Part shown: one piece after another, positions 7,313-46,307 of the stretch
Layout of the letters: each line of letters begins with the position of its first letter
Numbering within the stretch: the first letter of the stretch is position 1
From: Phaeosaccion multiseriatum
Lineage: Eukaryota > Protista > Ochrophyta, other classes
Assembly: GCA_965112735.1 (NCBI GenBank)
Contig: OZ218951.1
Location: 248,001 to 312,000, forward strand
Length of the DNA stretch: 64,000 nucleotides
Direction of reading: 5' to 3'
The notes under the pieces: generated by a model
What the model was told of the DNA's origin: nothing
The model's input: the letters and a program-made list of their open reading frames with translations, nothing else
Databases searched by the model: none
Made by a program: the position numbers and the translations under genes

Positions 7313-7743
7313 CTTTTTTTACTGTGATTGCTGTGATTTCGCGGTTGAATGGCACTTTTGACGCCCAATTATTACGCCCCATTAATTTTTTTTTACGCCA
7401 AATGACGATTTTTTTTGACGACGTTTGACGACGTTTGACGACGCTTTAGCCCCCTATTTGACGCCCTTTGACGCCTTTTGACGCCTTTTGACGCTCTTTG
7501 ACGCCCTTTGACGCCCTTTTCCGTGATTTTTTTTTACGTGATTTTTTTTAGACGAAATTAAGGCGAATTAAGATAAAAGGGCGTCAAAGTGCGTCAAAGG
7601 GCGTCAAAGGGCGTCAAATAGGGGGCTAAAGCGTCGTCAAACGTCGTCAAACGTCGTCAAAAAAATCGTCATATGGCGTTAAAAAAAAATTAATGGGGCG
7701 TAATTGGGCGTCAAAAGTGCCACTCAACCGCGAAATCACAGTA
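7313..7743. mobile_element. AT-rich foldback/MITE-like element built of TTTGACG(C/A) subrepeats
   Basis: Arm ~7313-7520 is the reverse complement of ~7575-7743, e.g. CTGTGATTTCGCGGTTGAATGGCACTTTTGACGCCCAATTA vs TAATTGGGCGTCAAAAGTGCCACTCAACCGCGAAATCACAG. Confidence 0.8.
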
Positions 7744-8321
7744 ACACTCGATTTGCGTAAGAATCGCCCAAATTTCGACCAAAACGGTTTTAGCGCATTT
7801 GCAGGAAAATGACGCTGGGAGGAGCGCTATAGCTCTTCGTGTAGCTCTTTGAGATCCCCACCGATCCATGGTCTTTCGGCTTTCATCGCCTCTTCCCTTC
7901 CGTAGTTGTCAGCATTTCCGCAGCAGCACCCCCTTCCCGGGGGGGGAGAAGGGGGATGTGCACGCCACGGAAATCGCTCATGGGCAGCTTGCTTGCCCGC
8001 CCTTCTGCAAGAGAACAGGCGCAGCGCTACGGCGGCTAGCCACAGTGGAGCAGCAGCAGGACCCTTGGCAAGCCTGGTGCGATTTCCGTGGCGTGCACAT
8101 CCCCCGTCCCCCCCCCGGGAAGGGGGTGCTGCTGCGGAAATGCTGACAACTACGGAAGGGAAGAGGCGATCAAAGCCGAAAGACCATGGATCGGTGGGGA
8201 TCTCAAAGAGCTACACGAAGAGCTATAGCGCTCCTCCCAGCGTCATTCTCCTGCAAATGCGCAAAAACCGTTTTGGGCCGGAAATCCGGCGATTTGGGCG
8301 ATTCTTACGCAAATCGAGTGT
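7744..8321. mobile_element. Non-autonomous TIR element (MITE) with ~235-bp inverted arms and TA target-site duplication (Tc1/mariner-like)
   Basis: Starts ACACTCGATTTGCGTAAGAATCGCCCAAAT and ends ATTTGGGCGATTCTTACGCAAATCGAGTGT. TA at 7742-7743 and 8322-8323; ~100-bp central spacer. Confidence 0.85.
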
Positions 8322-8370
8322 TAAAAAATTAAAAAAAAAAAATCATAATAAAAACCTCAAGATGCCACCA

Positions 8371-8718
8371 GGCCTCTCGCTGCGTGCTCCACACGCTGCC
8401 TGCATCAGGTAAGCCGCATCCCCTTGTCCTCTCTGGCTCCTCCTTTGCCACGACTCTTCGGCCTCCCTCCTCCCTTCCTCCTCCCTCCTCCCTCCTCCCT
8501 GTCCTTCCCCTCCGCTCCTCCTCCCCTCTCCTCCCCCTCCCCCTAGGCCATCCCGTCCGTGAGCAACAGCGTCACTAGCACCTGCACCACCGGGCTTGCA
8601 GTGATGTCAAGACCCGGGCACTCCATCTTGTCGAACAACAATTGGTCCACGCGCTCACGGAGCTCGTTCACAAGCACGGAGATGCGCGCCATGGCGGAGA
8701 AGCAGATCCACCCATCGA
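8371..8718 (-). pseudogene. Duplicated fragment of the DEAH helicase last exon and 3' flank (copy of 36311-36631)
   Basis: Encodes [58 protein letters not shown] count 3 mismatches in the 176-bp coding part versus 36456-36631. It lacks the exon's splice acceptor. Confidence 0.9.
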
Positions 8719-8798
8719 CAATGGGTCCGGGACCAGTCAGCCAAGTATACATCACCGCCCTAGACTATTCTTCAATCGCCCGTATCGTACTAGAGGGA

Positions 8799-11700
8799 TC
8801 AAACTACATCGAATCTATCTACATTCTTGGTCTCTTCAGGCTGATGCACACTCTTCCGCCGGAAAGGCGCTCCTCCTCGGCGAGGGCTGCTTCTCTCTCG
8901 AAGCACATGTCTCCTCGACTCTCCCCTGCCTTTGTTGCAAAGGGTTCGCTCTTCTGCCGGGGTTCCGCCGCTGTCCAGCTCCGTTCCGTGACGCGGCGCA
9001 GTGAGCGCTCGGGAGGACAAGACGTGCTTTCTCAGCGGTATGCCCACCCACGCCACGTCTCCACGCTTTGAATTGGTGACACTTTCACCTCTCATGGCCA
9101 TACTCAGGTCACCAACGTTAGCTCCTGCTTCAACGCGGCATCCAGGCTGCAAGTGAGCCCTTGCTCCGAGCCACGCGTTCTCCTCGACTTGCACAGTCTT
9201 GAAGACGAACCCTCCCGTGCCTTCGATGGTGTGCGCGAAGATTGTGGAGTCTTGCAACACCACCGCTTCGTCTCCAATGACGAGAAGATGCGCATCATAA
9301 GGCCTGAGCCATAAAGATGTGTCCTTGCCAACACTTGCCCCCAGCAGCCGCAGCCACGCCGCGTACACCGGCCCGCCCGCGAAGTACTTGATGCAGAGAG
9401 CCTCAATGAAGGCAGGGGCCATGCTGCCCAAGCGGTATATATCCAACGAAGGCGAATCGAGCGCTATAGGAGGCTGCCCCTCTTTGGCATGCAAGGATGT
9501 GCCCAGAACTCGATGGAAAAGAATGGCTGAGCAAGCGCCCGCCAAGGCCATGAGAACTTGAAAGACGAAGCTCCCCAACACAAGGAAGAACACTCCAGTA
9601 TGGCTCTCGCCCAGTGTATCCCTCGCCACCACTTCTGGAAGGACGAAGGGACAGAAGACGGCAGCCCCATGCACATGGCCATTGCGCAACAGCAGGTCAG
9701 ATACCGACGCGCTGATCAACACCCCCGGACACCAAACGCCGAGGAGCAGCACCACAGTCGCAAGCCCGCCGAGCGCATTGTGCATCCTCGACGGAACAGG
9801 AAGACTGCCTGCTGCATCGACGCCATCCTTCTCAGCAGCAGCACTCATTGGGTTCGGCAATACAAACGGCCTAGGGGCGCCCACTACAGAAGAGTTGCAC
9901 GGTACGTCGTCGTCTCTACTCACAACGGTGCGATCTGCGACCGTGCTTCCGTCCCCAATGCAAGCTCCGCCTAGGAGAAGAGCTTCGTTCGCAACAATGT
10001 TGAAGCGGCCGATTGTGATGCTTTGCGTATCCTCCTCTCCACGACCACCCCCATCAGCGAAAAGGTGCACAGAGCCCGCGAGCTGGGAGTTTTCCCCTAT
10101 CCTGAGCTTCTCCCATATCGTAGTGATAGGAAGGGTAAGAAGTGCGCACCCCCGCTCCAGCCTGGCGCCCATGGCGGAAGCAAAAACACGGTTGAGCCCA
10201 CATTGTGCCACAAAAAGGGAGCCAACTTTGAAGAGAGGACTCTCCTGAAGAACTCCGAGTGACAGCCGTGTGGTGGCGCTTGGGCCCAGCAGCAAGAACA
10301 CACGCTGTAGCGATAGCACTGCCACCATGTACAGCATGCTTCCGATCAGCAGCAGCACGGGGAATGCCAATGCACGAGCGAAGATGGAGACACTCTCCCC
10401 CGCGCCGTCGTCATCACCCCCACCGGCAAGCACAAGTATCCAGAGGGGCAGCAGGTACGACCCCAAGTTGGTCACTGAAAGCAGGGCCAAGGCACAAAGC
10501 TCTTTTCCTATCCGCCGCAGCCCCTGCTCGCGTTCGACCTCTGCCAGCGGGCCAGAGAGTGACGAATGGCCGAGCGACGCGTACGGACCGAGCTCCATCC
10601 CCTCGTCGATGACCAAGTCCTTTGGCTCCTTCTTCAGGCCCTCCCCCCCCTCCTGCGTCTGCCCCCCCTCCCATGGAGACGGACACACGTTGGACAGTAT
10701 GCACACCTTTGCTCCCTTCCCGATCCTCACGCGATGGACATGGAGCATGCCATTTCGAGTAATGACAGACGGGCGAATGACGGCTCCGTACTCGATCACT
10801 GCCCCTTCTCCAATCTCGATCAAGTCATGCTCGTGCAGCAGCCAGCTCTCTAAGCGCGCGCTTCCACTGATTCGTGCCCCCAGCAGGCGGTTCCACACCC
10901 GCAAGGCGAAGGTACCACGGAGAACAGAAATCAGCAGTGCGGCAAGTTTCAGCACATTCTGTACAGCATACCACCGCCAGTAGTACGAGCTCCTCACGGA
11001 CCATCGCCCCGGTCGCATGCGGCCAAGCACAGTCCACTTCACCACTACAATCAGGGCAAGGAACCAGCTTACTGACACGACGACGAGGGGTGGTAGCCAA
11101 GAAAGAATCGTCGTGTTGCCGCGCCCTGCTCTACGTAGCAAGTACACGCCAACGAAGCTGGGAGAAAACCCGCAGCTGAGCACAGCAACAACGAGCAGCC
11201 AACTCAGAACCTGCAGCACCACTTGCTTGCCAGTGCTGAGCCTCCGGTGCGCTTTCATCGCTTCCCCTTCTCCACCGACTGACTCGAAATCGCGCTCCTC
11301 GTCCTTCACTCGGGCTTCGCTTGCTGCCGACGACTCTTGCCCGCTGTCTCCTCGACCTCCGCCCTCCTCCGCGGCACCAAGCACTGAAAGTGCCACAGCG
11401 GTTCGGTTCTGGAAGATCTGCATTACTGTCAGAGCCTGCAGGAGTCACACAGACACAACAGGGTCAGCAACAAGGGCGAGACACAACACGGACGAAAGCT
11501 TTGTGCTCAAAGTCACTCACCTCGAAGCCGGGAACCTCTGCCCGAATACGCGAAACCGCCTGAGCTGCACTCAACGATGTGCCTCCCTCTGCGAACAAGT
11601 CGTCATTGGCCTGCAAGTGAGGCTGCTCCGTGGCCTGCCTCAGGATGCCCAGCACTTGGCGGGCAGTGTCGCCTAACGCCTCGTCACCATCGGACCACTT

Positions 11701-14700
11701 CACAGCGGTTTTGTTTCCCTTCGCTTCCGCCTTGATCATCCTCAGCACCTCTTTCACGTCTCTCTTTCCACTGCTCGTCATCGGTAGAGCATCCACGGCC
11801 ACAGCCGTGCTCGGCACCATGTATGACGGTAGCAGCCTGCTCACTCCTTGCAGCACCATCTCAACTTCGGCACTAGAAGGTGTCAGAGCCGCCACAACCG
11901 TCTCGCGCTCTCTGTCCACCGCTGCCACGGCGCTCCCCACCCCCTCTTGATGGAGCAGCGCAGCCTCCACCTCGCCCAGCTCAATACGATAGCCGCGCAC
12001 CTTGACTTGAGAGTCTCGGCGACCCCTAAACACCAGCGATCCGTCTGCCAGCTGCCGCACCAAGTCACCCTGTCAGAACGTGTTAAGTTTGAGATGCGTC
12101 AGATCAGAACAGTGCAGTAGGGAGCAGAGAAACCTACCTCCACCCTCACCCCCGTCTCTGCTTGTCACTGCATGGCATACCAAAGGCAAGTCAAATGTAC
12201 ACACAAACGCACACACACAAAGCCGCACACCCATGGGCAACCTTTTCGACTTACCGTACGATACACCCTGCGCTGGTCCGCCAAGAAGGGCGCGGGGATG
12301 AAGGCCTTCGACGTGAGCTCTGGGCGATTCAAGTACCCACGCGCCAGCTGTCTCCCCCCAATGCAAAGCTCGCCCTCCACGCCCTGAGGCACCAGCTGCA
12401 GACGCTTGTCCACCACATACACTTGCACGCCGGCTCGAGGCTTGCCGATGACGAACCCACTCGACATGGCACCCGGACTGTACTCATGTGCGGTCGCGAA
12501 AACCGTCGCCTCTGTTGGGCCGTAGCTATTGACAAGGCGAACACTGCGCCTCCACATGTCCACTTGGCCTTCCTTGATCGGCTCCCCAGCCAATGAGATG
12601 GACCGTAAGGTGGCCTCCTTAGCACCATTGGTGATGTCTTGCGGTCGAAGCAGCGACAGCAGTGACGGGGTGCAGTACATGTCTGTTACCCTCAAAGACC
12701 GTATCACCTCCGGCAGGTCGTTCAGCATGGAGCCCTTCGCTGCCAGGCACAGCGTCGCCCCACACGACAACGGCCCAAACAGCGACGCCACAGACACATC
12801 AAATGTCAAAGCAGCACTCAGGAGCACACGAGAAGATGCCGTTATCGTCAGTTCCTCTTCGTAGAGAGTCGCCATGAAGCTGGCCGTGCTTCTGTGCTCA
12901 ATCATCACGCCCTTTGGCCGGCCGGTACTACCGGACGTGTGAATCACGTACGCCATGTTCTCGCCCACGGCGTGGCACACAGGCTCCGCTGTACTCTCCG
13001 CTTGCATCACAGCCACCACGTCCACACAGCTCGCGTCTCCGACACGCCGCGCTAAGCTGGCATCGGCGGTTGCCAGCACCTCAGACTCGCCTACTGCCTT
13101 TGCCGTCGTCAGAACGACGCTCAGCCCGGCGTCTTGTGCGATCATCGACAGCCTATCGTCGGGATGCTCGGGATCCAGGGGCACGTACGCCGCCCCCGCT
13201 TTGAGCACGCCCAGCACTGCCACAACCGCCTCCACGCAGTCCCCAGCAATCAGCACCCCCACCAGGCACTCCGGCCCCACGCCTCTCCCCTGCAGCATGC
13301 ATGCCACCGTATTCGCATGCCCATTCAGCTCCCCGTAGCTCATCACTCGATCTGTCTCATACTCGTGCAGGGCTTCCTGCTCCGGACTGCGAGAGGCCAT
13401 CTCTTCGAAAGCCGCGTGCAGGAGGGGCGGTGGTGGCGATGCTTCCTCTGCACCTCCCTCCTCGTCTCCATTGCCATCCCCCGCCACCAGTGCAGCGCCG
13501 CTCAACGTCTCCACCACCTTCACACGGTCCTCGTGTGCCAAGAGACTCAGCTTCCACACGCTCTCGCCCGGCCTGCCCACTGCACTCTCCAGCAGCGCCA
13601 GGAAGCTCCGCGCCAGGGTCTCCACTGTGGCCTGGTCGAGCACCGCCGTATTGTAGCACAGGCTGCCGTGCATGTCCGACGCACTGTCCGTGCTGCGCAC
13701 AAGGTATAGTTCGATGTCAGTCGTATTATTCTTCCAAGTATCCAAACCCGCCTCCTGTAGTACAAAGAAGGCCTGCAGCGCCTTGCCACCATCATCTCTG
13801 CCGAGCTGGGCCCGCTCAACCACCTTGTGGAACGGTGCCTCGGCATGCTTCATGGCACCCAGATACGCGACCTGTACGCGAAGCAGCACCTCCCGAAAGC
13901 TGGGGCTTCCTCCCAGACCCAGACGGAACGCGAGGATGTTGACGAAGCATCCCAGCACGCCCTCCAAGCCTTGCGCCACGTCTCTTCCGAAGTGCGCAGT
14001 GCCCACCACCACATCCTCCGCTCCGCACACACGAGCCAGCAGCACTTGGAACGCGCCCATGAGCCCCACAAACAGCGTGGCGGAGCTACCCGCGCACAGC
14101 TTACTCAACTTGACCAGCACTGCATTGGGTAGCACCAAGTCCACCTTCCCACTTCCTCCCACACTGATATCTTCATGCACCATTTCTCCACTGAGGCCCT
14201 TTTGGGCATGTCGCTGATGGAGAGGCAGCTGCAGTGGACTGGTACCAGCCAGTTGACCCTGCCAGTATTCAAGCAGCTCCTCAATACGGCCTTCGCCGTC
14301 CAGCCGAGCTCGTTGCCACCTGGAGTAGTCCGCGAAGCTGAAGGGCAGAGCCGGTAGGTCTTGTGCAAAGCCTTGCCCGGCCATGAAAGCCGCGCACACC
14401 GCCTTGAACTCGCCCTGGAAGAGCAAGTAGCTTGCACCATCAAAGATGCAATGATGGAACGTAGATACTGCGGTATAGTGCTCCTCCTCTCCGCTCTGCT
14501 TCGGGACGTGCACGACCAGCGTGCGCCATAGTGGCTGTCTCTGCTCCAAATCGAATGTACGAGCATAATCGGCCTCCATCAGGCTCCGAGCCGCACCAGC
14601 ACTGCTCGCCACGGCTGAAGAGAGAGCAGCAGACACCACCTCGGCCGCCGTAATTCCAAGCTGAACCTGTCTCAGAGAGCCCTGCTTTGTCCACTCAAGC

Positions 14701-17700
14701 GCCGTCCGGAGCACGTCATGTCGCTCCACTATGCTGCCTAACACTTGTGCTATCATGTCCACAATTTCAGCGGATGTTCGTCCGGAGATCAGCGAGAGGG
14801 GCAGCGGCAGCACCGCTGGGAGATTGTACGCGCTCTGCCCGCCAGGGGCAGTCGTCCGCAGTGCTACGTCCGAAAGGTACATGTGCTCCTGCTGGTAAGC
14901 GGCGGGGGCGTCTGTGTCCGAAGAGGACTGCCAGAGGGCCATGGAGCTGCCATTTGCCCCGGCCCCCGTTGTTTGATCGTCTTGCTCATTCAGCGGCCCC
15001 GAGTCGGCTCCCAGCACTTCCTCTTCGACCCACACTGCCAGCGCTGACACCGTTGGATACGAGAAGAGCACATCAGTAGTCACCACAACCCCGAAGCGAG
15101 CCTGTAGCTGGCCGCGCAGCTCCACTGTTGACAAAGAGTCAAGACCTGCTTCCATCAAAGGAGTGTTCTCATCCAGCTCTTCGGCACCCTCCCCAAGGAG
15201 GTCCTTGGCCATATCAAGCACCGCCAATCGCACTGATTGCTGTCTCTCACCAGGGGGCAGTCTCAAGAGCGCCTCGCGCACTTCATTGTTGAGTTTGGTG
15301 TTGCTGGATGCGCCTGCTGCTGTTGAGACAAGCCCTGACAGCAGGGGCGATCTACTGGACACCCCCAAGCTGCCTGCAAACTTGCCCCAGTCCATGCCAG
15401 GCAGGACAGCCACATCACCCACGGACGCTGACGACATCGCAGCGGCATCTAAGGCAGCCATGCCCAGCTCAGCTGACACCGTGCCCACACCCGCGAGCTC
15501 CAACTGCTTTTGAACGATATCGAGCTGGGCGGCCATACCAACGTCAGCCCATGGCCCCCACTGCAATGACGCCCCTGCAAGCCCGAGGTGTCGCCTGTGC
15601 CGCATCAGCCCGTCCACAGCCGCATTCGCCGCAGCGTAGTTTGCCTGTCCAGCGTTGCCCAGTACTCCGGCCATGGATGTGAAGCAAAAGAAAAAGTCAA
15701 GGCCGGGAGAGCGCCCCTCCTCCTTCGCCCAAGCCAGCGAGAGCTCGTGTAAGTTCACCGCCCCCTGCACCTTGGGTCGGAAGACGTTCATCACGCTCTC
15801 CGCCGTCTGCTCTTGCAGCGGCTTATCATCCAGCACCCCGGCAGCATGCACCACACCGCGTACAGGGGGGAGCAGAGGCAGGACGCCCCCCAGGCAAGTC
15901 CGAAGTGCCTCAGCATCAGCAACGTCACAAGTAGGAGTATGGATCAGCTCCACCTTGTTCCGAAGCTGCTGCCACTGTTCCGTCATGCTCTCGGCGATCT
16001 TCCCACTCCTCGACAGCAGCACCAGGTGACGAGCGCCCCTCGACGCGAGGTGCTGGGCCGTCACGAGGCCGAGAGCTCCCAGACCGCCGCTGATGACGTA
16101 CGTGCCATCGGACACCACTGGCACACCATACGAGGGGTTGGTCAGCACCACCTTGCCGATGTGCTTCGCTTGGCTCATGTATACCATGGCCTTCTGAGTA
16201 TCCTCCCTCATGTCAAAGGGTATCGTCGGTAGGGGCTTCACATTGCCTGACATGCAGTCTTCAGCAAGACGCTGCAGCCCACCACTGATCCAGCCCGGCT
16301 GAGCTACGAAGTCAGACTCAATCATGCTATCCAGTGCCAGTAGCTCGTACCTCACATCGGATCGGGCGGTGCGCATCTGCTCGTGACTCCACACGCCTCG
16401 CTTGCCAATCTCGACGAATATACCGCCCTCACTCAGCATGTCCAATGAGAAGGGAATGTAGTCTTCACTCAGACAGTTGAGCACCACGTCCACCTTCACC
16501 TCACCCATGGACTGCTTGAACGCCTCTGCGTCTCGCGATGACGCAATGTGCTCCACTCCCAAGCTCCGGAGGAAGTCATGCTTCACAGCAGCGCCGGCAG
16601 TGGCGTACACCTCTGCGCCGACCCGCTGAGCATACTGTACGGCAGCAAGGCCCACACCGCCAGACGCGGCGTGAATAAGAACCTTCTCTCCAGCCTTGAG
16701 GCCCTCAAGGGCCTTTATCACGGTGAGGAACACGGTGGGAAGTGCAGCGGCCTGCTCGAAGCTCAGCACGGCCGGCATCACGGCCAGACACGCGTCCTCC
16801 GTCACCAGATGGCTGCGCAAACATCCTCCGTCCGCGAAGCCATATACATTATCACCGACACGGAAGCGCGAGCTGCCTCCTGTTCTGATCACCTCCCCGG
16901 CGAACTCGGAACAAGGGTCTCCAGGGTCGCCAGGATACATGTCCAGCACATTCAGCACGTCCCAGAAGTTGAGCCCCACGGCCCTCACCGCCACCTCTAC
17001 GGAGCTGCCAGCTGCTGGGTCGAGGGACGGATGCTTACCAACGCTCGTATCGTCACGCAGGGCGAAAGCGCTCACAATGCTGCCTCTTGCCTTCAAGTCA
17101 AGCGCGAAGGGTAGCTGCAGGGGTTGATGTACAAGCTGAGGTGTCCAGCATTGCCCATCGCGTACCCACACATCTTCTGTGGAGGCAGGGAAGGCCAAGC
17201 CCAAGGCAACCTCGCTGTCTTCGACCTTCTTGTCGCTCAGGTCCACCACACCGATCTGCATGGAGGGGTGCTCCATCCTCGCAGTCCGCACCAGCCCAGT
17301 CACCCAGCTGTGACACCAGTCCTCGCCGCTTTGGACGCCTCTCGTCAAAACCGTCAGCGGCACACTCGACGCAGTGGACAGGCTCCTGAGTAGAGCCATC
17401 AGAGCGTAGGCCGCTCGAGCAAGCTGGCCCTCTTCTGCGTCTCCTTCGCCATCCCTGGGGATCAGCACGTACAAGATTCGAGTCCACTCGTCCTCTTCAA
17501 GAAGAGCACCGTCGTCCCAAGAGCCGCCCACCCGTCCGTATCGAGGGTGCACGTCCACGCCCTCCGGAACAGAGCGTCGCACTGCCGCAATGATCTCAGG
17601 CTCACTCTCCCTCTGGTCCTGTGCACTAATCACGAGCCACTTCTGCTGCACCGCCTCACTATCATGATGAGGTCGCTGTGGAGGTACGGCTGACTCCGTG

Positions 17701-20700
17701 GGCTTCCACTCCAGCGTGTACATCGCTCGACGAAGCGGATTGGAGCGAGCGAAGCCTCTCGCTCGCTGAGCGCGGAATGCACGCATCTCCACCAGAACCT
17801 GCTTACTCTCGAAATCGGCAATCTTGATGTCAAACTTGATGCTGTTGCCCCCGGGTTCCACTTCAGCGAGCGTCGTGTGCACCCACACCTTTGCTCCTGT
17901 GATGACACTGAGGACGACAGTCTCGTCGAAACCAACGGGCAAGAATGGAGCTCCGCCTCTTTCTTCCAGCAGCTGGTGTGGGATTGCGTGTAGGATGGAG
18001 TGAGTCGCATTGTCGAGCACAGCAGGGTGCAGAGCAAAGTCCGTCGCCTCCCAAGGCTCGCAGAGCTCCGAGTCGAGAGCACGCACGACCGATAGCACCT
18101 CTCCGTCATTGGCGAACATCTGTAAATTCCGCTCAAAGCGAGGACCATAGTTGAAGTTGGCATCCGCCATTGCCTTGTACAGGCCACGGGCCAAGTCCAC
18201 CGTCCCTACGCGCTCTTTGATTCCCTCTACATCGAGCGTGTCACGCGGCTCGGCTCGATCTGTGATGGACACATAGTCCATCCTCGCGGTTATTCCCTTG
18301 TCGCCCGTGGCACCTCCGAAAAACTGCATGCTTCCATCTCTCGCGTACAAAGCACTCAAGCCGTCACAGACAATAGTACTGCGACTCTGCGCTTCGTCCG
18401 TGTTGATGTCCAGGAAACCCTCAATCTCCAAGGGAGCCACAAAGTTGGCTCCCTGTAGGAGTACTTGCTGCTCCACCCCGAGCTGTCTTCCTCCTAGAGC
18501 AGCGACGACGCCCACTTCAATGTACGTCACCCCCGGAATGATCACCACATTGTTGACGGCATGGTCCTTGAGAAGGCCCTTGAGGTGAGGAGAGAAGGGG
18601 CTGGCGAGCCGCATTCTGTCTCCCTCTTGGGACAGCTCGCCACTCGGCAAGAATGCCCGTGGAAGCCTGAACCAGCGAAACGCTCGGCGTGTGGGGTACA
18701 AAGCGTCACGTTCTGACTCTTTGTCCTTGTCAAGATCATGACTGACGCTGACGCCCTCTCCGTCAACACGCGTGGCAGTACTCTCAGCTCTGGGACCGGA
18801 TAGCACGGCGTGAGCATTGGTTCCACCGGAGCCAAAAGAGCTCACGGCAGCAACGAGTGCTCCTGTGTAGCCGCCTCGACCCACTGGCACCATGGTCGCA
18901 GGCAAAGTCACAGGGACGCCGGCGAGCTCCAGCTCGGGGTTGCTGTCCTTCAAATGCAGGTTCGGAGGGGCGACGCGGTGCTGCAGCACCAGTACGGTCT
19001 TGATGAGGCCTGCAACACCTGCGGCGCCCTCCAGGTGTCCGATGTTGGTCTTCACCGCACCTACCACCAACGCGTTTCCCGCGCCGCGCTCCAATCCACA
19101 GTACACGGCCTTGACGGCGCTCATCTCGATGGGGTCTCCCAGCGCCGTTCCCGTGCCGTGCGCCTCCACGAAGCCCACCTCTGCGGGGTCTCTTCCCGCC
19201 TCTGCCAGCGCGGCAGACAGGAGCTGCTGCTGAGCAAGAGGACTGGGTGCCGTCAGACGAGCGCTGGCCCCATTGTGGTTGACCGCACAGCCCTCGATCA
19301 CCGCTAGCACAGTGTCCCCGCTGGCCATAGCATCATCAAAACGCTTCAGCACAATGGCACCACATCCTTCGCCTCTGACATAGCCATTGGCCGCTGCGTC
19401 AAACGTTTTGCAGCGCCTGCGACAAGGCCAAGAAAGATAGGAGAGGGGAAGGGAGTGGGGCATGGCAGGGAAGTTCTTGTTGGGTCAGTAGAGAAGACGC
19501 CCAAGAATGAACTGCAAGAGCGGCAATTGGGTAAATATATAATAGCACTCAGACCAGAGCGGCGGGTGCAACTTACCAGTCGGGGGAGAGGAATGTCCCC
19601 GCAAACAATGACTGAAAGGTGCTCTTCCCGAGCAGCAGGTTCACGCCACCGACCACCGCAGAGTCGCACTTGCCCAGGCGGAGGTTGCTGCAAGCAGCGT
19701 CCAGAGCCACCAGGGACGACGAGCATGCTGTCTGCAGCAACGCACTGGGGCCGCAGAGACCCAGCGTGTAGGACACGCGATTAGCAATGTTCGAAGCCGT
19801 CAGGCCCATTCCGCCGTAGGCGCTCTGAGCAGCGGCATCTCCTGCCACGAAGCCCCAGTCCGTGTCCGACAAGCCCACGAATACGCCGGTGTTGCTGCCC
19901 CGCAGGCTGCTCTTGCTGTGGCCCGCGCGATGGAGGGCCTCGAAGGCCACCTCCAGCATGAGGCGCTGATTGGGGTCCATTGCCTCTGCCTCCGCAGCAC
20001 TGATGCCAAAGAAGGCATTGTCGAACATCTCCACGCCCTCAATGAACCCTCCCTGCAGCTCCGGCTCGCCCGCCTTGCTGTCCCATCTGTCGCGTGGTGC
20101 TGCTGTGATGCAGTCTCTGCCCTTGCACAGCAACGACCAGAACTGCTCCGGGCTGTTGGCTCCGCCGGGGAAGCGACACGCCATACTCACTACAGCGATG
20201 GGGGCTCGAGAGTCTAAGGACGAGGGCCGATTTGCCGGAAGCACCCGCTCACGCTCAGCATCACCCGGCGCCTCAAGAATCTGGGCCTCGAGCCACACGG
20301 CCATTGCAGACACCGATGGATACGAGAAGAAGGCACCGTTCGAAACGGTGACACCACACCAGGCCTTGATTCGATTGCGAAACTCCACGGACGCCATCGA
20401 ATCGAGCCCGGCTTCCATCAAGGGCATCCCTGCTGCCAAGGTGAAATCCTCGCCAACACACTCGACTGCCATACCCGTCAGGACTTGCTCGATCCTCTCC
20501 CGCCGTGCTGACTCCGGCAAGTGCAGGAGCTCCTCCCGCACCTCGGCATTGACGCTGTAGCCCTTTGCCGCCTCACCACTTTCTCCGCGGTCCGTCAACT
20601 GCCGGAGGAAAGCGCTGTGCACAGGGTCCAAGCTCGCTCGAAATCTGCCCCACCTCATGGCCGGCATGACAGCCACTTCCTGCACGTTGGTATGCGTCTG

Positions 20701-29700: not shown

Positions 29701-30696
29701 CGCTGCTGCTCGCCTCAGGCTGGTCTGATGGGGAGTCTCCAGCCTTGTGCGAGGGCCACAAGCGGTACATCCCCGTGGCGGGGTGGCAGCCGATGAGATA
29801 CACATTGGCCATGAGCGCTCCGAAGGTTACCATGACGCCCTTGGGGTCACCGGTGGAACCGCTGGTGTACTGCAGAAACGCCAGGTCCTCTTTGGCCACG
29901 CTCAGCTCGTCAAAGCTCCTCCTCCCTGCGCCTGACGAGGAGGAGAAGAAGAAGCTCAGAAGCAAACCCCCATCCGTAGCCTTAAAGTCGAGGTCCGCAG
30001 GCCACAGCTTGCGCGAGTCAGAGAGTGGATTGGACCTGTCCACTCTGCGCACAGCTGCTATCGTGGAGTCGGTGAGGCACAGCACGGGCTTACAGTCCGC
30101 CACGATCTTGCTCATCTTGGGCAGTGACTTGGACAGGGGAGGAGCAGGCGGGTACACCATCACCGCCACCACGCCCGCTCTCAGGCAGCCCAGGAAGGCG
30201 GCGAAGAAATGCAGGCCCGGCCCGTAGCACAGCACCACCATGCTGCCCTTGGGCACGCCCCACTCCTCGCGCAGCATGTAGGCAATCTTGCCCGCCTGAG
30301 GAAGGGTTGGGAGAAGAACGTTTGCATCTTGGGTTAATTATCACAAAGTGTCTAGTAGGAGTACCGGGGGGGGTTAAGGTGCAAGACTACAGCACGCCAG
30401 CAGCAGCTGAATCGGCGTGAGAAAGCAAGCAAGGGCATCAACATCTCCACGGAACGTCTGACCTCCACGGAATGTTTGTTCGTTGCTTTGCTTACCTCAT
30501 CCCACATGCGTCTGAAGCTGTACCTCTCCGCCTCTTTGCCCTTGCCATCGTACCAGAAGGCAAAGGGCTTGTCGCCGAGGTCAGCAACAACCTCATGAGC
30601 CCTCCTCAGTAGAGGAGCGAGAGAAGAAGAGGCCGCGACTCCCTCGATTCCGCCTCGTTGTCTCCCTGGAGACGTCACGGTTTCTTGTTCCTCCAT
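8799..30696 (-). CDS. Hybrid FAAL-PKS-NRPS megasynthase with Pls-like membrane terminal domain (~6,490 aa, 13 exons)
   Basis: Exons 30496-30696, 29621-30295, 29049-29365, 28851-28894, 27981-28702, 27155-27785, 26529-27015, 26098-26393, 24192-25650, 19577-23869, 12255-19416, 11521-12069 and 8799-11435. All are GT-AG and phase-compatible; total 19,473 nt = 6,491 codons. Splicing restores the split motifs WLPQYH|DMGL, YRT|GDLVR and SPDG|HCKTFD. The start ATG is uncertain. Confidence 0.92.
9030..11230 (-). other. Pls-like terminal domain: paired TM segments alternating with three left-handed beta-helix acyltransferase-like repeats
   Basis: Three repeats start [17 protein letters not shown] and LLGASVGKD, each followed by hexapeptide I/V-x-I-G strings ([44 protein letters not shown]). 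Hydrophobic helices lie between them, plus the motif [20 protein letters not shown]. Confidence 0.8.
11390..14900 (-). other. NRPS module: C-A-PCP
   Basis: [11 protein letters not shown]; [84 protein letters not shown]; [17 protein letters not shown]. Confidence 0.92.
15020..20205 (-). other. PKS module 3: KS-DH-ER-KR-ACP (no AT)
   Basis: [25 protein letters not shown]; [16 protein letters not shown] and HPAVLD; [12 protein letters not shown]; [30 protein letters not shown]; [17 protein letters not shown]. Confidence 0.9.
20280..24825 (-). other. PKS module 2: KS-AT(malonyl-type)-KR-ACP
   Basis: [28 protein letters not shown]; [23 protein letters not shown]; [22 protein letters not shown]; [16 protein letters not shown]. 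Confidence 0.9.
24900..27295 (-). other. PKS module 1: KS-ACP (no AT, no reductive domains)
   Basis: [40 protein letters not shown]; a short linker leads directly to [20 protein letters not shown]. Confidence 0.88.
27981..30620 (-). other. Fatty acyl-AMP ligase (FAAL)-type loading domain; ACP1 follows at ~27390-27640
   Basis: [68 protein letters not shown]; ACP1 [14 protein letters not shown]. Confidence 0.88.
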
Positions 30697-31055
30697 TTCG
30701 TCGCCTGCTGGAGAGTCTCGCTCCCGCAAGACTTGCGTCACCCCCCCTATTGGAACGTTACGACGGCCTTCCTCGCCCCTGGAACCTTCATTTCCATTGG
30801 CGTGGCGGGAGAGGAAGGGCTGCGTCACACCTCCCAGGCATCGTCCCCTCCTCGTGCACGATCCATCCTCACTTTTCGTCCCCTTTAAGCACCAATAAGA
30901 TCTTAGCAGCAAGAAATGGCACTGGTGGGCCCTCCCTTTTTTCATTTGAGTACTTTTTATTTTAATTTTCCCTTCTTTCTCTTCAGAAGATTGGTGTCTT
31001 TTTCTAAACGGTTACGTTGAATCCGGGTAGACAAGATCCACCCCCTCGGCTCCAG

Positions 31056-32647
31056 GCGAGGCTTCTCGGAGCTTGAACTTTCTTCTTATTGGGATTTCTT
31101 CAAGTAGCATCGCGGCGCCAGCCAATCATCTCCCACCTCAGCGACAACAGATGGAGAGAGCCATGGCTGATCACCAGGCTCTTCCCGGAGAGAGACGAGA
31201 CCCCAGCGCATGGGGCACGCACCTGTCGGTGGCAGAGGGGACCAGCCGGCCGCGGGTGATGCCCCCGGGGGGGGCGAGACACAGCCTGGGGGTGAGGGCG
31301 GGAGCAGACTTAGGCGAAGAGGGTGATGTTGGGATCGAAGTGATCCACCCTGGGGTGGGGGCGGAAGGGTGCGACGCAGCTGCAGGGCAGCAGGGGACCG
31401 CAGATGGACCAGCCTCCGATAGCGAGGCAGACCCAGGGGGGGGGAGTGACGAAGACCCAGGGGGTGGAAGTGACGAAGACCCAGGGGGTAAGCATGACGT
31501 GGAACCAGGAGGGGATGACGATAATGAGGGCGGCCGGCCACGCTGGCGGACAGAGGAAACCAAGATGTTGGACGGGGCTGGACCCTCCATCCCACACAGC
31601 CGACACGGGGAGAGGCGAGGTGCCCAGAAGCGCTTTACCAACAAGCTCCTCACGTCGAAGGCGAGGACAGACTTTCTGGAACGCCTGAAAGCGATCCCAC
31701 AGCAGGACGAACGGGAGAAGGGCCTGGCCAGAGCCCTCAGCCACAGTGTGAAGGGGGCTGGTGGTTGGCTTCATCTTCGACCTACCAAGAAGGCAGGGGG
31801 AGCACTCCACCTCACGGACGCCGAGCATAAGGGTGCCATTCGGAGACGGCTGGGCATCGATCCCACCTACAGCAGGGACTGCCATAAGTGCCCTGGCAAG
31901 ACGCTGACGGAGGGGCATATCATCACCTGCACTAAGACGGGGCTCGGCACACCCCAACACGACGCTGTGCAGAAGGCACTCGTCGCCCTGATGAAGAGCG
32001 AAGCAAGGCCTTGGCAGAGGGATAGTGCAGAACACCGGCTTCCCCTTCTTTATGAGGGCAAGAACGGTCACCCCGCGACGAGGGAGAGGGGGGAGCAACG
32101 CCGTGAGGGGTGACGCCCACGTGGCCAAGCAGATGGAGATGGACATTGTGACTCCCCCCAGGATGTTTGAGCTTCCATCCGACCACGAATATGGGGACGG
32201 CCACAAGCAAGTCCCTGATGATCGACGTCACGCTCACTGATGCCACTAACACCACCAATCGTGGCAAGGCATCGAAGGAGGCACTCGCGGCAGCCAAGAA
32301 GGCTGAAGCAACCAAGCGCACCAAGTATGGGGTGCCACAAGCCGGCATGGAAGGCCAGGGTGGAGATATCCACTATGACCCCACGAGGTACCATCTCGTC
32401 CCTTTCGGTATGGAACAACAAGGCGCATTTGGTCCGTCTGCCCAGGTGTTTATTAAAACACTCGCTGGGGGCATGTCCAGCCATCAGGGCTTATGCGAGG
32501 GCTGTTTGCGTCATTCGGCGGCGCTTAGCCGTTGCGCTCCAGCGGGCCCGACACGAAAGGTCGATTCGACATAGGATCCTGGCTGGCATCAACTTTATGT
32601 CGATGGGGAGAACTGACGCATCGGAGGGATACGACCTCGGGGGCTAA
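31056..32647 (+). mobile_element. Degenerate, 5'-truncated non-LTR retrotransposon (CRE/R2-type restriction-like endonuclease C-terminus)
   Basis: Across ~3 frameshifts: AGGWL..P, AIRRRLG, CCHC finger CHKC...GHIITC, QHDAVQKAL (RHD), MDIV...LMIDVT (PD..D), AEATKRTKY, LVPFGMEQQGAFG, RRRLAVALQR. No RT domain visible. Confidence 0.75.
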
Positions 32648-32916
32648 GTTCCCCGGGGCGGGTGAGACATTACTATTAGACAATCATAGATGGCACTTGA
32701 CTTAGCTAAGGGTGTAAACACCAACATGCTTCTCGGGCCCCCCGAAAAGCAGAAGCCTGAGGCGGCCTGCGGCCGAAAGCAAGAAGCCCGGGGCTGGCCT
32801 GCGGCCAGAAGCCTGCAGGAAAGTAGCGAGAAGCCCAAGTCTCCCATTTTTTTTCCGCGCTTGGAAAGTGATACACGTGGGCTGCTGGTCGAAATAATGA
32901 TACACTCTTCATTCCA

Positions 32917-34820
32917 TCGGCTCCAGACTGGCCTAGAAGCCAACGCCTAGAGACGAAAATCGGCCGGCCTAGGCGGGCCGCAGGCCCCCGGCCTAGGCCT
33001 TTCTTTGGCGCAGCCCCCCCGGCCTAGGCCTATCGACCCTGGACAGGATTAGCTACGGTGTGCGCCGGCCGTACTCAGTAATCAGCCCCCGGCTGGCGCA
33101 CGCATAATCCGTACTCAGGCCGGCTGGTCACCAGCTGTAAGCAACCAGGCCGGCTGGCGCCGGTCATAATCAGTAACCAGGCCGACTGCGCCCGTAATCA
33201 GTAATCAGATAATCTTGTCCAGGGTCGACTCCCTCCCTCCCTCCCTCCCTCCCTCCCTCCCGCCCTCCCTCCCTCCCTCCCTCCCTTCCTCCCTCCCTCC
33301 CTCCCTCCCTCCCTCCCTCGCTCCCTCGCTCCCTCCCTCCCTCCGCCCCTCCCTTTCTCCCTCTTTCTATACCTCCATCCCTCCCTCCCTCCCATCCCGC
33401 TATTCCTCCCTGTGGAAAGTCGATTCGTAAGGCAATGGCCCAGGCCCAGGCAGACACGGTGAGAACGAGTGGCATGGCTCTCACTATCCTATGTGCGTAG
33501 GTGGTCGTTTAGGACTAGCATGCGATAAGTTAATAGAGGCAAGGCTGGCTGCTAGGCTGGCGTTGGGGTTGCTGTTACCTTGTCCGTGTGTCTAGTTCTA
33601 TCCTATCTGTAGGCGACAGCGCATGTCGCTTTACACTATCTGTAGGCGACAACGCTTGTCGTTCTACATCCCTCCCTACCTCCTTTTATCCCTCTACCCC
33701 TCTGTCCCTCCCTCTCTCCCACCCTCCCTCCCTCCCTCTGTCCCTCCCTCCCTCCCTCCCTCCCTCCCCCCCTCCCTGCCTCCCTCCCTCCCTCCCTCCC
33801 TCCCGCCCTCCCTCCCTCCTTCCTTCCTCCCTCCCTCCCTCCCTCCCTCCCTCCCTCCGCCCCTCCCTTCCTCCTTCCTTCTATCCCTCCCTCCCTCCCT
33901 CCCTCCCTCCCTCTCTCTATCCCGCTATCCCTCCGCCCTCCCTACCTCCTCGTATCCGTCTATCCCACTGTCCCTCCCTCCCTCCCTCGCTCCCTCCCTC
34001 CCTCCGCCCCTCCCTTTCTCCCTCTTTCTATACCTCCATCCCTCCCTCCCTCCCATCCCGCTATTCCTCCCTGTGGAAAGTCGATTCGTAAGGCAATGGC
34101 CCAGGCCCAGGCAGACACGGTGAGAACGAGTGGCATGGCTCTCACTATCCTATGTGCGTAGGTGGTCGTTTAGGACTAGCATGCGATAAGTTAATAGAGG
34201 CAAGGCTGGCTGCTAGGCTGGCTTTGGGGTTGCTGTTACCTTGTCCGTGTGTCTAGTTCTATCCTATCTGTAGGCGACAGCGCATGTCGCTTTACACTAT
34301 CTGTAGGCGACAGCGCTTGTCGTTCTACATCCCTCCCTACCTCCTTCTATCCCTCTACCCCTCTGTCCCTCCCTCTCTCCCACCCTCCCTCCTTCCCTCT
34401 GTCCCTCCCTCCCTCCCTCCCTCCCTCCTTCCTCCCTCCCTCCCTCCTTCCTCCCTCCCTCCCTCCCTCCCTCCCCCCCTCCCTCCCTCCTTCCTTCCTC
34501 CCTCCCTCCCTCCCTCCCTCCCCCCCTCCCTCCCCTCCCTCCCCTCCCTCCCTGACCCTGGACAAGATTACGGTGTGCGCCGGCTGTAATCAGTAATCAG
34601 CCCCCGGCTGGCGCATAATCAGTAATCAGGCCGGCTGGTCACCGGCTGTAATCAGCAACCAGGCCGGCTGGCGCCATAATCAGTAATCAGGCCGGCTGCG
34701 CCGGCTGTAATCAGTAATCAGATAGGTCGAGGCCTAGGTCTAGAACCGCCGGCCTGGGGGAGAAAAAATGGCCGGTCTAGAGCGGCCAACGGCCGCCGGC
34801 CTAGGCCAGTCTGGAGCCGA
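32917..34820. mobile_element. Composite non-autonomous element with 20-bp TIRs, two internal mini-elements and a ~660-bp tandem duplication
   Basis: TCGGCTCCAGACTGGCCTAG (32917) and CTAGGCCAGTCTGGAGCCGA (ends 34820); GGCCTAG subterminal repeats; ~33340-33740 repeated at ~34001-34400. Confidence 0.7.
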
Positions 34821-36455
34821 ATTTCATCTCTCTGAGAGCAGCTCGCTGCTCATCCCTTCCCCTCTCGATACACTGGCTGCTTACACGCCTCACTATCAAA
34901 GCATTTGTTCTACCCCCCTGGTGTATCTGTAGCTCGGGGGTGATAGTCTCACGCATCTCCTGAGCCCCACAAGCAGCTCGTGTCCGCCAGCTCCCAGCCA
35001 CGGTCAGCACACGCTGCTCAAAATGTCAGAGGAAGCAGCAAGAGGAGGCAGGTGTAAGTGTATGGGCAGGACATCGACATTGGATATCGAGGAGGTCTAT
35101 TTAGGTCAAATTGGGGACAATGGGAGGGGCGGTTCAGTGACGAAGCCGTGTCGGGGGGCAAAGGGATGAGGCCGTGTAGGGGGCAAAGGGGAGTGACAAG
35201 GCCGTGTAATAATAATAAGGAAAGGAGTATCAGGACAAGGGCAGAAAGGGCATTGGGGAAAACGTAAGGACAGGACGACATCATCACAAGGGTACTTAAA
35301 GTACACAACATTACGTTAAGTACCCTTGGCATCTGTCTTGGAGTGAGCGGTAGGCCTCTAGGAGGCTACTGAGAGCTGTTCCGGGAAGGGTCGTCACTGC
35401 CCTTGGCCCGGAGGCTAACAGCCGGCATTCGACTTGTTGTCTCACGATGCGCATGTTCAAACTCGCTAAAACAGTAGTTGTGGGGGTGGAGGGCTGTTTG
35501 GGTGTCTCTAAAACGGTAGTGTCTTGCTTGGAGGTGAGTGGCCCGATAGTATGCTATCGAGAAAAAGAGGAAGGGGAGGAAAGGGGGGGGGGGGGTGGGC
35601 CCTGACGCTCATGGCTTGGAGCCAGACACATGGGCGGGTCCGTAACCTGCCCTTCCGGCCGTGACCTGCCTTTTTCGGTGGTTTATCGTTTTACTCGCAG
35701 TGGATGGGGATAAAAATGCATTATTTCTTATTTTCTTAGAGTTAGCCTGGCGTCGGCACAAGGCCTGCAGCGGCGGTCGCACGTGTCTTCTTCAACCCCC
35801 TTTGCTTGCGCGTACATGACCCTGCAGAAATGGTGTGAAGTCCTATCGCATTGGTCTTCTTTGCAGCCAGGTGTCGAGGTCAGGGTACTAGCGAGCCGGA
35901 CGGCTTTACAGGCGTCCTCGTAGGAGGAGCACCCCTGCGAGTAGGTAGGCGGTGCATTTTGTGCTTCTCGCTCCCAGCGCCGTGAGCCGGCGCAGTCCTC
36001 AAATCACTCCCTACTGTGCCCCCACCTCCACTTCCAACCCCTCCTCCGCCCCCGGAAGGGATCTTCCCTCTGCTAGCGGCACCACTCTCTCCTCCACTTG
36101 CCCCCATGCCCCCCCCCCCCCCTGCCTCCCTCCTCCCCCCCCCTGACGTGCTTGTGCTCCCTCTTCCACCAAGCCTCCCTTTGCTACCCCCCTTGGATGG
36201 TGTGCTCCCTCCTCCGCCGCGATTCGCTTCCCCCCCTCCCCCCCTGCCATGCCTCCCTCTGCGTCCAGTGCCATCCCTACCTGCTGTGCTCCTTTCTGCA
36301 CCTCGTACTTGGCCTCTCGCTGCGTGCTCCACACGCTGCCTGCATCAGGTAAGCCGCATCCCCCTTGTCCTCTCTGGCCCCTCCCTCTGCCACGACTCTT
36401 GGGCCTCCCTCTCTCCCTTCCTCCTCCCTCTCCTTCCCCTCCGCTCCTCCTCCCC

Positions 36456-39400
36456 CTAGGCCATCCCGTCCGTGAGCAACAGCGTCACCAGCACCTGCAC
36501 CACCGGGCTTGCAGTGATGTCAAGACCCGGGCACTCTATCTTGTCGAACAACAATTGGTCCACGCGCTCACGGAGCTCGTTCACAAGCACGGAGATGCGC
36601 GCCATGGCGGAGAAGCGGATCCACCCATCGATGGTCACCTGCGCAGCACCATCACACACACACATCCACACAAGCGTTACAGAAGAGGGGGGGGGGGAGG
36701 AGGAGTGGAGAGGATGGTCGGTGGGAGAGAGAGAGAGACGGGTGTGGAAGGTGACGGTGGTAGAGAAGGAGAGGGTAGAGAGAGGGGGAGAGGGAGAGCA
36801 CCGAGCAGGAGAAGGGTCCCCATGCGGTGTGGCGCCTCTCCTCTCTCTCCTTACGTAAGCCCACGTAAGTGACGTACGTACCTTGCCCTGCATGCCTGCC
36901 ACGCTGAGCTCCCCTCCAAAGAGCATGAGTGCGTAGGGGGACACCTCCGTGCTGTCGCGGATGAACACCTGCAAGGGCATCATGTAGAGGCATATAGGCA
37001 GAGGCGTACAGGGAGGCAGTCGCAAGGGTATCATGTAGAGGCATATAGGCAGAGGCATACGGGCAGTCGTAAGGGCATCATGTAGAGGCATACCGGCAGT
37101 GTCAGGGGTGGGGAGGGGGGGGGGGGATTGAGCGCGTCGTGTCGATGGAAGGAAGGAAGGGAAAGAGAGAGTGAGTAAGTGAGAGAGAGAGAGAGAGAGT
37201 GAGAGAGAGGACTCCCTCACCACCACTCACCTGTCTATCCACTGAAATGCCTCTCCCTTCCCCTCCCCTTCCATCCCCTCCCCCCCCATCGACTGCCATC
37301 TTCTTACCTTGCTGGTGGCCACCCTCTCGTTGTAGACCAGCCAGGGCGAGGAGAAGCTGTTGGTGTGAAAGTTCACAGATGCCGGGTGCAGGAACACGCG
37401 ATCGTCCCACTCGCGTCCCCCCGGTCCGTGCCTACCCCCGCCGCCGGAGCCAGTACCAGTGCCAGTGCTAGTGCCATAGCCTCGTCCACCATTAACGCTA
37501 CCGTTAGGGCCATTACCGCCGTATCCCCTTCCACGGCTCGCGTTGCCTCCTCCTTGCTGCTGTACGACGGGGTATGGGGGGACGAGAGGGAGCGAGGGAA
37601 GCACATGAAAGCGGATGAAACTTGATGCTAGGGGACCTAAGTGCTTTGAAAAATCAATGCGATCAATCAGTGGGAGGCAATCCCTCTCCTTCGACCCTTG
37701 TTGAGCGTATGACGGACAGACCAGTTCAAACCCATCCCTTCCTCACTCCCTTCCCAACCAAAGCTCGACCTCTCTTGAGCCTCACATGGTCCACACGCTC
37801 CTCCCCCTCGCCGCCCCATCTGGACTTTCCTATATATATATACTATATATAATATATATATACATCTAAGCGTTATATATATCCACGCCTCCCCCTCCTG
37901 CTGCTACTGCCGCTGGTACCTCTACCTACCCGCTGGTACTGCTGCTGCTGCTGCTGCTGTTGGGAGCCGTAGCCCCCTCCTCCTCCTCCTCCTCCTCCTC
38001 TTCCTCCTGCTGCTCCTGGTCCGCTGCCGCCACTACCTGGCGCCCCTCCCGGCAGGTACTCCTCCCCCATGGAAGCAGAGGCCGCCCTGGTGAAGAACTT
38101 GAAGTGACTCGCCTCGCTGCGCTGCACCACTGCACCCACACCCACCAGGTCCACGTACTGAGAGATGGCAGGGGATGGCAGGGGATGGTAGGAGATGGCA
38201 GAGGAGGAGGGGGGGGGGGGGATACGCATGTATACATACATTGTACAGGTCGGGCATTGCGTGAGGAAAGGGCTGTACGTGTGGCTGGTACGTGCGTGTG
38301 TGTGGGTGTGTGTGTGGGGGGGATGTGTGTGGGGGTGTGTGTACATGCGTGGGAAGATCTCCAATGCGAGGGTACTCGAAGTGGCGATCAAAATCCTCTG
38401 CGCTGGACTCAATGCCCATCTCCCTCCCTCCCCCTCCCCATCCCCATCCACTGCCATCCCTCCCTCATCCCCATCCACTGCCATCCCCCCCCCCCTTCCT
38501 TCCTCCCTCCCCACCCACTACTACCATTCCCTCTTCCCCATCCGTCAACTGCCATCCATCCGCTCACCTTCTCTTCGGGCCGCACCACCTTGACAACGTT
38601 GGGGTACAGGGCAGCGCACACGGCGGCCCTGACCACCCTCCATGAAGAGGCGTTGGCGTTGACAGGGGCACACGCGTCAAGAGCCTCGCGAGGGGAACGG
38701 ATGAAGTCGATGCCAGCCAGGGCCTCTAGCAGCTGCCTGCGGGCGTGTGTGTGTGTGTGTGTGTGCGTGCGTGCGTGCGTGTGTGTGCGTGCGTGCGTGT
38801 GTGTGCGTGTGTGTGCGTGTCAGTGTGTGGTTGTGTGTGTGCGTGTGAGTGTGAGTGAGTGTGAGTGCGTGTGTGTGTGCGTGTGAGTGAGTGTGAGTGA
38901 GTGTATGTGTGTGTGTGTAATAAAGGGAGGGAGGAGGGGGAGGGGGAGTCCTCGGTGCTCAGGGTAAGCATCGGCCTAAAATGAAGCAGCCTACACAAAG
39001 TTCCCAGCGCTCTCATCAGATTTAGACTTAGGCGTGAGGTGAGGTGTGTGTGGGGTGAGGGGAGGGGAGGGGAGGGGAGAGGAGGTGAGGGACGTGGTTC
39101 TTCGCTCTGCCTGCGTGTCAGCAAGTTGTGGCAGTTAAACGCCAGTCAAACGCCAGTCATGTTGCAGTCAAACGCCAGTATGAAGTATGAATCACCTGCG
39201 GAGGTCCCCTATCTCCTTCATGCGGTCGAAGCTCAGGCCGTGGCTGTTACAGTAGTCCCTCTTGGCTCGCTGGCCACCCCTGCCCGCCGCCTCCCACTCG
39301 TCCACTGCAACAGCAAGCAGCAAGTGGTCGCTCCTGAGGTACGAGAGAGAGAGAGGGGGAGGGGGAGGGAGAGAGAAGGTATGGGGGGGGGGGGGTGGGG

Positions 39401-45400: not shown

Positions 45401-45846
45401 CCACATCCATGGCATAGCATAGCATAGCCCCTCCTCCTTCCCTCCTTCCCTCTCCTCCTTCCCTGCTTCCCTCTCCTCCTTCCCTCCTTCCCTCTCCTCC
45501 CTTCCCTGCTTCCCTCTCCTCCCTTCCCTGCTTCCCTCTCCTCTTTCCCTGCTTCCCTCTCCTCCTTCCCTGCTTCCCTCTTCCCCCTTCCCTCCCTCTC
45601 CTCCCCTCTTCCCTCTTCCCTCTTCTCTTCTCTCCTTTACCTCCTGGGTTGCGTAATGACCACTCGGAAGTCGTCTCCTCCCTTGCCCTGCTCCCACGCC
45701 TCCAGCAGGAACTGCGGGATTTGTGTGGTCTTGCCGCAGCCTGTCTCACCAGAGATGAGCACCACCTTCTCCGGCCATAGGGTAGGCAGGCAGGGGGGCA
45801 GGCAGGCAGGCAGGCAGGGGGGCAGGCAGGCAGGCAGGCAGGGGGG

Positions 45847-45879
<33 letters not shown>

Positions 45880-46307
45880 AGGGAGGGAGGGAGGGAGGGA
45901 GGGAGGGAGGGAGGGAGGGAGGGAGGGAGGGAGGGAGGGAGGGAGGGAGGGAGGGAGGGAGGGAGGGAGGGAGGGAGGGAAAGGCAGAGGGGCAGAGGGG
46001 CGGCACAGCGCCTGGGTGAGTGCCGGGAAACCGTGTCGGCCGAGAGGGAGGGCAGGCGGGGAGGGGGGGAGCCGTCGCATCGCCACCCTCTATACTACCC
46101 CAGTCTGCAGCTTCCTTCCTAAACGCAACAACAAAGGAGCACTCAGCACTACACTTCCCATCACCCTTCCTACCGCATGTCAACAATCACCCCTACCGTA
46201 TGTCAACAATCGCCCCGACGGATATGCACACGTAGATACACACACGTAAACATTACAAACACACATAAACACACAGACAAACACACACGCAGATACACAC
46301 TCTCTCC

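Follow-up and report, generated by a model that had tools for sequence, protein, structure and literature searches.

The stretch analysed here (the window) comprises 64,000 nucleotides of the Phaeosaccion multiseriatum genome (contig 2, positions 248001-312000, in a 67-Mb genome of ~60% G+C) and harbors two neighbouring genes, a very large polyketide synthase-nonribosomal peptide synthetase (PKS-NRPS) megasynthase and a DEVH-box helicase. The terminal exon of the helicase, together with its proximal 3' flank, is present twice in the window, once in its own gene and once in the 3' flank of the megasynthase. The structure is an ordinary segmental-duplication scar of a known kind. We consider it likely that the helicase tail was captured a single time, most probably at this locus, that the megasynthase and its attached fragment were then multiplied by segmental duplication and gene conversion, and that exchange with the helicase gave rise to a second type of downstream flank.

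The two copies, designated E_L and E_R, and the spacer that separates the former from the megasynthase are as follows:

8371-8718, minus strand: left copy (E_L), 348 bp, an apparent helicase-derived pseudo-exon in the megasynthase 3' flank, with no AG acceptor.
36311-36631, minus strand: right copy (E_R), 321 bp, comprising most of the helicase terminal exon, a GA microsatellite and a conserved 95-nt 3' block.
8719-8798, minus strand: 80-nt megasynthase 3' spacer, probably native, which ends at a microhomology junction (GGACCCAT.. before the junction, TCGATGGG after it) and is shared up to that point with the fragment-free paralogue C2:540k.

Alignment over the whole length and BLAST agree with the original prediction of two same-orientation copies with ~98% coding identity. 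E_L and E_R match at 88.9% identity over 351 columns (E 8e-133), with 173 of 176 positions identical in the coding block and 90 of 93 in the 3' block; most of the differences reside in the length-variable GA/CT microsatellite that separates the two blocks. The copies enclose 27,592 bp (8719-36310), and domain scans and repeat matches recovered in this interval the megasynthase and the dispersed repeats that had been described as a ~27.6 kb block with transposon debris. The distance of ~80 bp between the left copy and the megasynthase stop was also correct, as E_L starts 80 nt past the TGA at 8801-8799.

Reading of the sequence reveals no AG preceding E_L, which looks like a non-coding relic, i.e., a pseudo-exon. 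Splicing of E_L into the megasynthase was rejected on this ground and because the frame is broken by indels in the copies on contig 1. A retrocopy of the helicase mRNA was likewise rejected, since there is neither an upstream exon nor an A-run, and one class of copies (class R, see below) continues into the genomic flank. The helicase-derived copy, which is not a retrocopy, begins only 2-10 nt inside the terminal exon, very near the intron-exon boundary (window 36631-36638 and 8718-8725).

The helicase is the source of the fragment and is itself intact, because E_R represents its C-terminus, the upstream exons carry helicase domains and the body of the gene is single copy. Its parts are distributed as follows:

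36456-36638, minus strand: coding part of E_R, the true helicase terminal exon, with 60 codons plus TAG (36458-36456) and an AG acceptor at 36640-36639 (sequence reading and phmmer).
36639-46089, minus strand: body of the single-copy DEVH-box helicase (exon-by-exon searches).
45640-46089, minus strand: motif I GETGCGKT and TQPRR.
43953-44183, minus strand: DEVH.
42080-42967, minus strand: helicase-C region.
39647-40081, minus strand: HA2 (HA2_C, E 3.5e-12).
37230-38819, minus strand: OB-like exons.

By phmmer, the terminal-exon peptide is similar to the extreme C-terminal part of DHX29 (residues 1312-1367 of 1369, E 6.8e-6) and of DHX36. The exons of the helicase, like those of the megasynthase, were searched individually; searched in this manner the helicase exons display motifs I, Ia and II, HA2 and the conserved C-terminal helix region of the DEAH/RHA DHX29/36/57 group. 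Simple repeats aside, the helicase body occurs once in the genome. The exon reading, the C-terminal match and the upstream motifs thus sustain the earlier identification of the repeat as helicase terminal exon plus proximal 3' flank, with the helicase left intact. One helicase intron contains, at 38745-38918, a ~174-bp GT/GC-rich repeat with well over 100 genomic matches, many of them in tandem arrays.

The fragment occurs at eight genomic loci, named here by contig and position, and is always accompanied by a megasynthase or by the helicase. At five of the six loci outside the window (C2:463k, C2:1012k, C2:2638k, C1:1177k and C1:1259k) it follows a megasynthase 3' end that is 93-97% identical. 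The sixth, C6:691k on a third contig, contains a 5'-truncated fragment behind a truncated megasynthase and represents a truncated seventh copy. In the alignment, the junction (...CTGGTCCCGGACCCATGAT followed by CGATGGGTGG) is identical in six paralogues on two contigs, including that of the window, and was therefore formed once. The 2.6-kb megasynthase terminal exon has nine genomic copies, 94-97% identical, with homology running for 5-6.5 kb or more; several copies of >1 kb at >90% identity, six of which share an identical breakpoint, qualify as segmental duplications. Three further megasynthase paralogues are devoid of the fragment. The fragment-free locus C2:540k shares the 80-nt spacer exactly to the junction and then diverges, and thereby reveals what is probably the native megasynthase flank, as well as a short imperfect microhomology (GACC(C)AT / GAT) at the junction with the first nucleotides of the helicase exon.

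The megasynthase paralogues differ in module content and are therefore mosaics, not unit copies. The 27.6-kb block as a unit was not found elsewhere in the genome: the paralogues have the 3' part of the megasynthase and the fragment in common, but the region at 31-36 kb is not shared as a whole. The two loci on contig 1, C1:1177k (L014/L020) and C1:1259k (L015/L021), lie 82 kb apart and are nearly identical (tree branches of 0.0015-0.002); one of them has an extra ~600-bp insertion between the stop codon and the helicase fragment, and both are without an equivalent of window 14912-20300, which corresponds to one module. On contig 6 (C6:682000-701799; L016/L022), truncated megasynthase 5' parts are clustered in tandem. 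One copy of this cluster is cut in an intron microsatellite (at the equivalent of about window 25519) and joined to the middle of the helicase fragment, followed by 80 bp of the dispersed repeat termed TE_R below, and the 5' region of the next copy appears ~1.1 kb beyond the TE_R piece.

Beyond the fragment, the copies fall into two flank classes. Class R comprises the helicase, C2:2638k, C2:1012k and C6:691k, in which GCGAGAGGCC is followed by AA and by TE_R, cut at the same internal nucleotide. C2:2638k shares the helicase downstream region to position 33054, ~3.3 kb beyond the fragment, except that a stretch lying between TE_R and the repeat debris is inverted and in part deleted. Class L comprises the left copy of the window, C2:463k and the contig-1 pair, in which an AT-rich stretch precedes a miniature inverted-repeat transposable element (MITE). 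The corresponding features in the window are:

35571-36308, minus strand: TE_R, a copy of a dispersed repeat that is broken internally where it meets the end of E_R; upstream of this break, other copies (L026-L029) run on with sequence of their own.
33054-34759, no strand assigned: repeat debris that includes tandem units of 661 bp and recurs downstream of C2:2638k.
8322-8370, minus strand: AT-rich flank L (TGGTGGCATCTTGAGGTTTTT...), common to C2:463k and both contig-1 loci.
7746-8365, no strand assigned: 620-bp MITE flanked by TTA(A), with inverted arms of 168 nt, inserted in the window copy and in no other.
7328-7744, no strand assigned: second MITE, of a family with at least 50 copies, shared with the flanks of the contig-1 paralogues.

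Because the megasynthase lies on one side of the fragment and the helicase downstream region on the other, class R has the form that one would expect if a megasynthase-linked copy had undergone exchange with that of the helicase. A joint resembling the product of recombination between E_L and E_R, in keeping with the original prediction, is seen at C2:2638k, C2:1012k and C6:691k. From this one might propose that the helicase-derived repeats act as recombination handles, i.e., that exchange between E_L and E_R made tandem or circular megasynthase forms, whose joint is fossilised at the three loci, and that such exchange may still alter PKS-NRPS copy number in populations by excision or duplication; we regard this proposal as rather doubtful.

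Capture of the fragment by a Pack-type transposable element or a MITE, which had been offered as an alternative in view of the adjacent MITEs, was rejected: copies of the MITE families end before the fragment, so that the family boundaries exclude it, and the fragment occurs at only eight loci. The arms of the 620-bp MITE are 98% complementary, and its family numbers at least 50 genomic copies, some of which form a regular array on contig 15, ~4.8 kb apart.

The age of the capture can be assessed from the divergence of the copies. Of 269 aligned sites, 6 differ between E_L and E_R; in the coding part the other copies depart from E_R at 3-6 of 176 positions, and E_L is no closer to the helicase than they are. 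The introns of the paralogues differ by 3.4-7%, and the frame of the fragment is broken by indels in two contig-1 copies. The rate at which the fragment changes is thus close to neutral, and the match between its divergence and the intron rate suggests a capture about as old as the radiation of the family. The proposed recent integration finds no place here, given the same junction at five other paralogues, a divergence of 3-7% that includes the introns, and a left copy no closer to the helicase. In the tree of the megasynthase terminal exon, class R forms one clade (94/99) and class L does not, which fits an older class L and a class R derived once.

The suggestion that the megasynthase borrows the 3' processing signals of the helicase is unsupported, because the fragment contains no TGTAA (a motif not established as the poly(A) signal of this organism), diverges as fast as the introns, carries frame-breaking changes in two copies and is missing from three sister paralogues.

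The window is the only locus in which the source gene lies beside a derived copy, so that the adjacency noted in the original prediction is peculiar to it. By our own arithmetic, the chance that one of six copies falls within 28 kb of the helicase is ~0.005 genome-wide and ~0.04 for contig 2 alone. At column 203 of the fragment, the left copy of the window still has the base of the helicase, and a derived C is common to all six other megasynthase-linked copies. This sole adjacency and the retained helicase state indicate that the window is probably the birthplace of the junction. In the scheme that we favour, one rearrangement would have joined the helicase terminal exon and proximal 3' flank to a point 80 nt after the megasynthase stop, at the microhomology. 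This joining, most probably at the present locus, would have come about either because the megasynthase block was inserted at the 3' end of the helicase, with ~345 bp of the target duplicated, or through local duplication. The megasynthase and its helicase tail would then have multiplied by segmental duplication and gene conversion to at least five further loci and one truncated locus, and exchange between megasynthase-linked and helicase copies would have produced the second flank class, with the transposable element (TE) found downstream of the helicase.

Several observations weigh against this scheme. The native flank seen at C2:540k was not found in the window or at any fragment-bearing locus, which speaks against a tandem duplication followed by deletion; the flank L motif was not found beyond TE_R; and neither insertion nor tandem duplication with deletion is fully closed. 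The exon tree rejects monophyly of the fragment-bearing paralogues (approximately unbiased test, p 0.0018), and three losses or gene conversion are needed to account for it. The sites of the fragment are themselves mosaic, columns 145 and 203 displaying all four combinations. Together, the rejected monophyly and the mosaic sites make the evidence for polarity soft and suggest that gene conversion among the paralogues is part of the history. The analysis, in addition, covered the assembly of a single genome and neither outgroups nor reads. Metagenome contigs contained no match to an exact 21-mer of the fragment, and a word search with the 256-aa open reading frame (ORF) of the last two helicase exons gave none either, a blank that is uninformative about relatives. 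A literature search retrieved nothing relevant.

The fragment could instead have been captured elsewhere, and a fragment-bearing paralogue later placed beside the helicase by ectopic recombination through the shared 340 bp. Gene conversion and recombination among the copies are evident, and homology-directed targeting would account for the adjacency equally. Such a course, however, calls for two separate events at the helicase locus, the left copy of the window keeps the helicase state where all other megasynthase-linked copies are derived, and the class L flanks look ancestral and those of class R derived; we therefore judge a secondary arrival unlikely.

The original prediction viewed the 27.6-kb block as a recent mobile island, integrated at the helicase 3' end, e.g., from a circle, with duplication of the target, and still excisable through the repeats. 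Its geometry was partly right: the block is bracketed by E_L and E_R beside an intact helicase, both edges are simple breakpoints, one with microhomology and the other inside a TE, and the megasynthase-fragment-TE_R joint expected of a circular or tandem form occurs at C2:2638k, C2:1012k and C6:691k. Its recency and its island nature, however, are contradicted. The left junction is found at five other loci with 3-7% divergence and is hence not recent, and the other copies are at least as close to the helicase as the left one. No integrase, recombinase or transposase domain was detected by Pfam in the megasynthase exons or in the ORFs tested at 30.3-36.3 kb, a set that did not include all small ORFs. 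Common dispersed repeats make up the stretch from the megasynthase 5' end to the right copy, a stretch that does not travel with the paralogues; the latter, varying in module content, are mosaics and not copies of a unit, and the block does not recur as a unit elsewhere. The fragment itself occurs at eight loci, and occurrence at many other loci had been named beforehand as speaking against an island. We consider an island very unlikely. An assembly artefact, in which one copy or the intervening block was misjoined in a region rich in repeats and microsatellites, has almost no probability, since the copies differ by substitutions and indels, possess distinct unique flanks, and show the same junction independently assembled at five other loci on two contigs.

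The remaining contents of the block are dominated by the megasynthase gene, the modular composition of which was determined exon by exon:

8799-30945, minus strand: PKS-NRPS megasynthase gene, ~22 kb, identified by Pfam scans, its 5' limit inferred from the end of paralogue homology.
27849-30277, minus strand: exon with FAAL/AMP-binding.
24188-25597, minus strand: exon with ACP-KS.
19573-23805, minus strand: exon with KS-AT-KR-ACP-KS.
12165-19463, minus strand: exon with KS-DH-ER-KR-ACP-C-A.
8799-11423, minus strand: terminal exon with hexapeptide repeats, ending in the TGA at 8801-8799.
31121-32698, no strand assigned: dispersed repeat of ~1.58 kb that lies immediately upstream of the megasynthase; of its at least 40 copies, many are truncated at one end.

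Copies related to the FAAL-type 5' region (window 27800-31000) number at least 25, lie on many contigs and are 76-96% identical; the region thus belongs to a family far larger than the nine copies of the terminal exon. The segment at window 30948-31564, which spans the megasynthase upstream region and the first part of the dispersed repeat, shows 98% identity with C2:375820-376430, and the adjacent coding part of that paralogue is only 81-90% identical; the pattern is that of mosaicism, or of a partial conversion of recent date.

Duplicons, known for example from primate genomes, are segmental duplications with a common junction or a small core derived from a gene. Like duplicons, the present system has many copies of >90% identity, one shared breakpoint of common descent, TEs at the block edges and conversion mosaics. 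Unlike those of primates, it is found in an alga, its core is a neutral 340-bp helicase pseudo-exon attached to giant PKS-NRPS genes, and there is no sign that the core drives the duplication. Bacterial integrative genomic islands duplicate the 3' end of their target gene (the att repeats at tRNA genes). The resemblance to them consists of direct repeats of a gene 3' end that bracket a biosynthetic block and leave the target gene intact; in contrast to such islands, no integrase was found here, the repeat measures ~340 bp and not tens of bp, it occurs at eight loci, its age is about that of the family, and the block does not travel in one piece. Microhomology-mediated rearrangements, whether by break-induced replication (MMBIR), fork stalling and template switching (FoSTeS) or end joining, can yield an insertion with a duplicated target. 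The short imperfect microhomology at the megasynthase-fragment junction, together with the other edge, which lies inside a repeat with partial similarity, is consistent with such a mechanism, which for this locus we infer from two junction sequences only. The presence of an exon fragment beside MITEs is reminiscent of capture by Pack-MULEs, Helitrons or MITEs, but the MITE families, of at least 50 copies each, exclude the fragment.

For annotation, the consequence is that the helicase-like ORF behind several megasynthase genes should not be taken for a gene. Because the megasynthase paralogues are mosaics, simple gene trees are unreliable for them. The pseudo-exon cleanly marks the common descent of one subfamily of very large algal PKS-NRPS genes. 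It indicates that this subfamily grew by recent segmental duplication and gene conversion, and not by means of mobile islands, and it points to the locus at which the subfamily probably originated.

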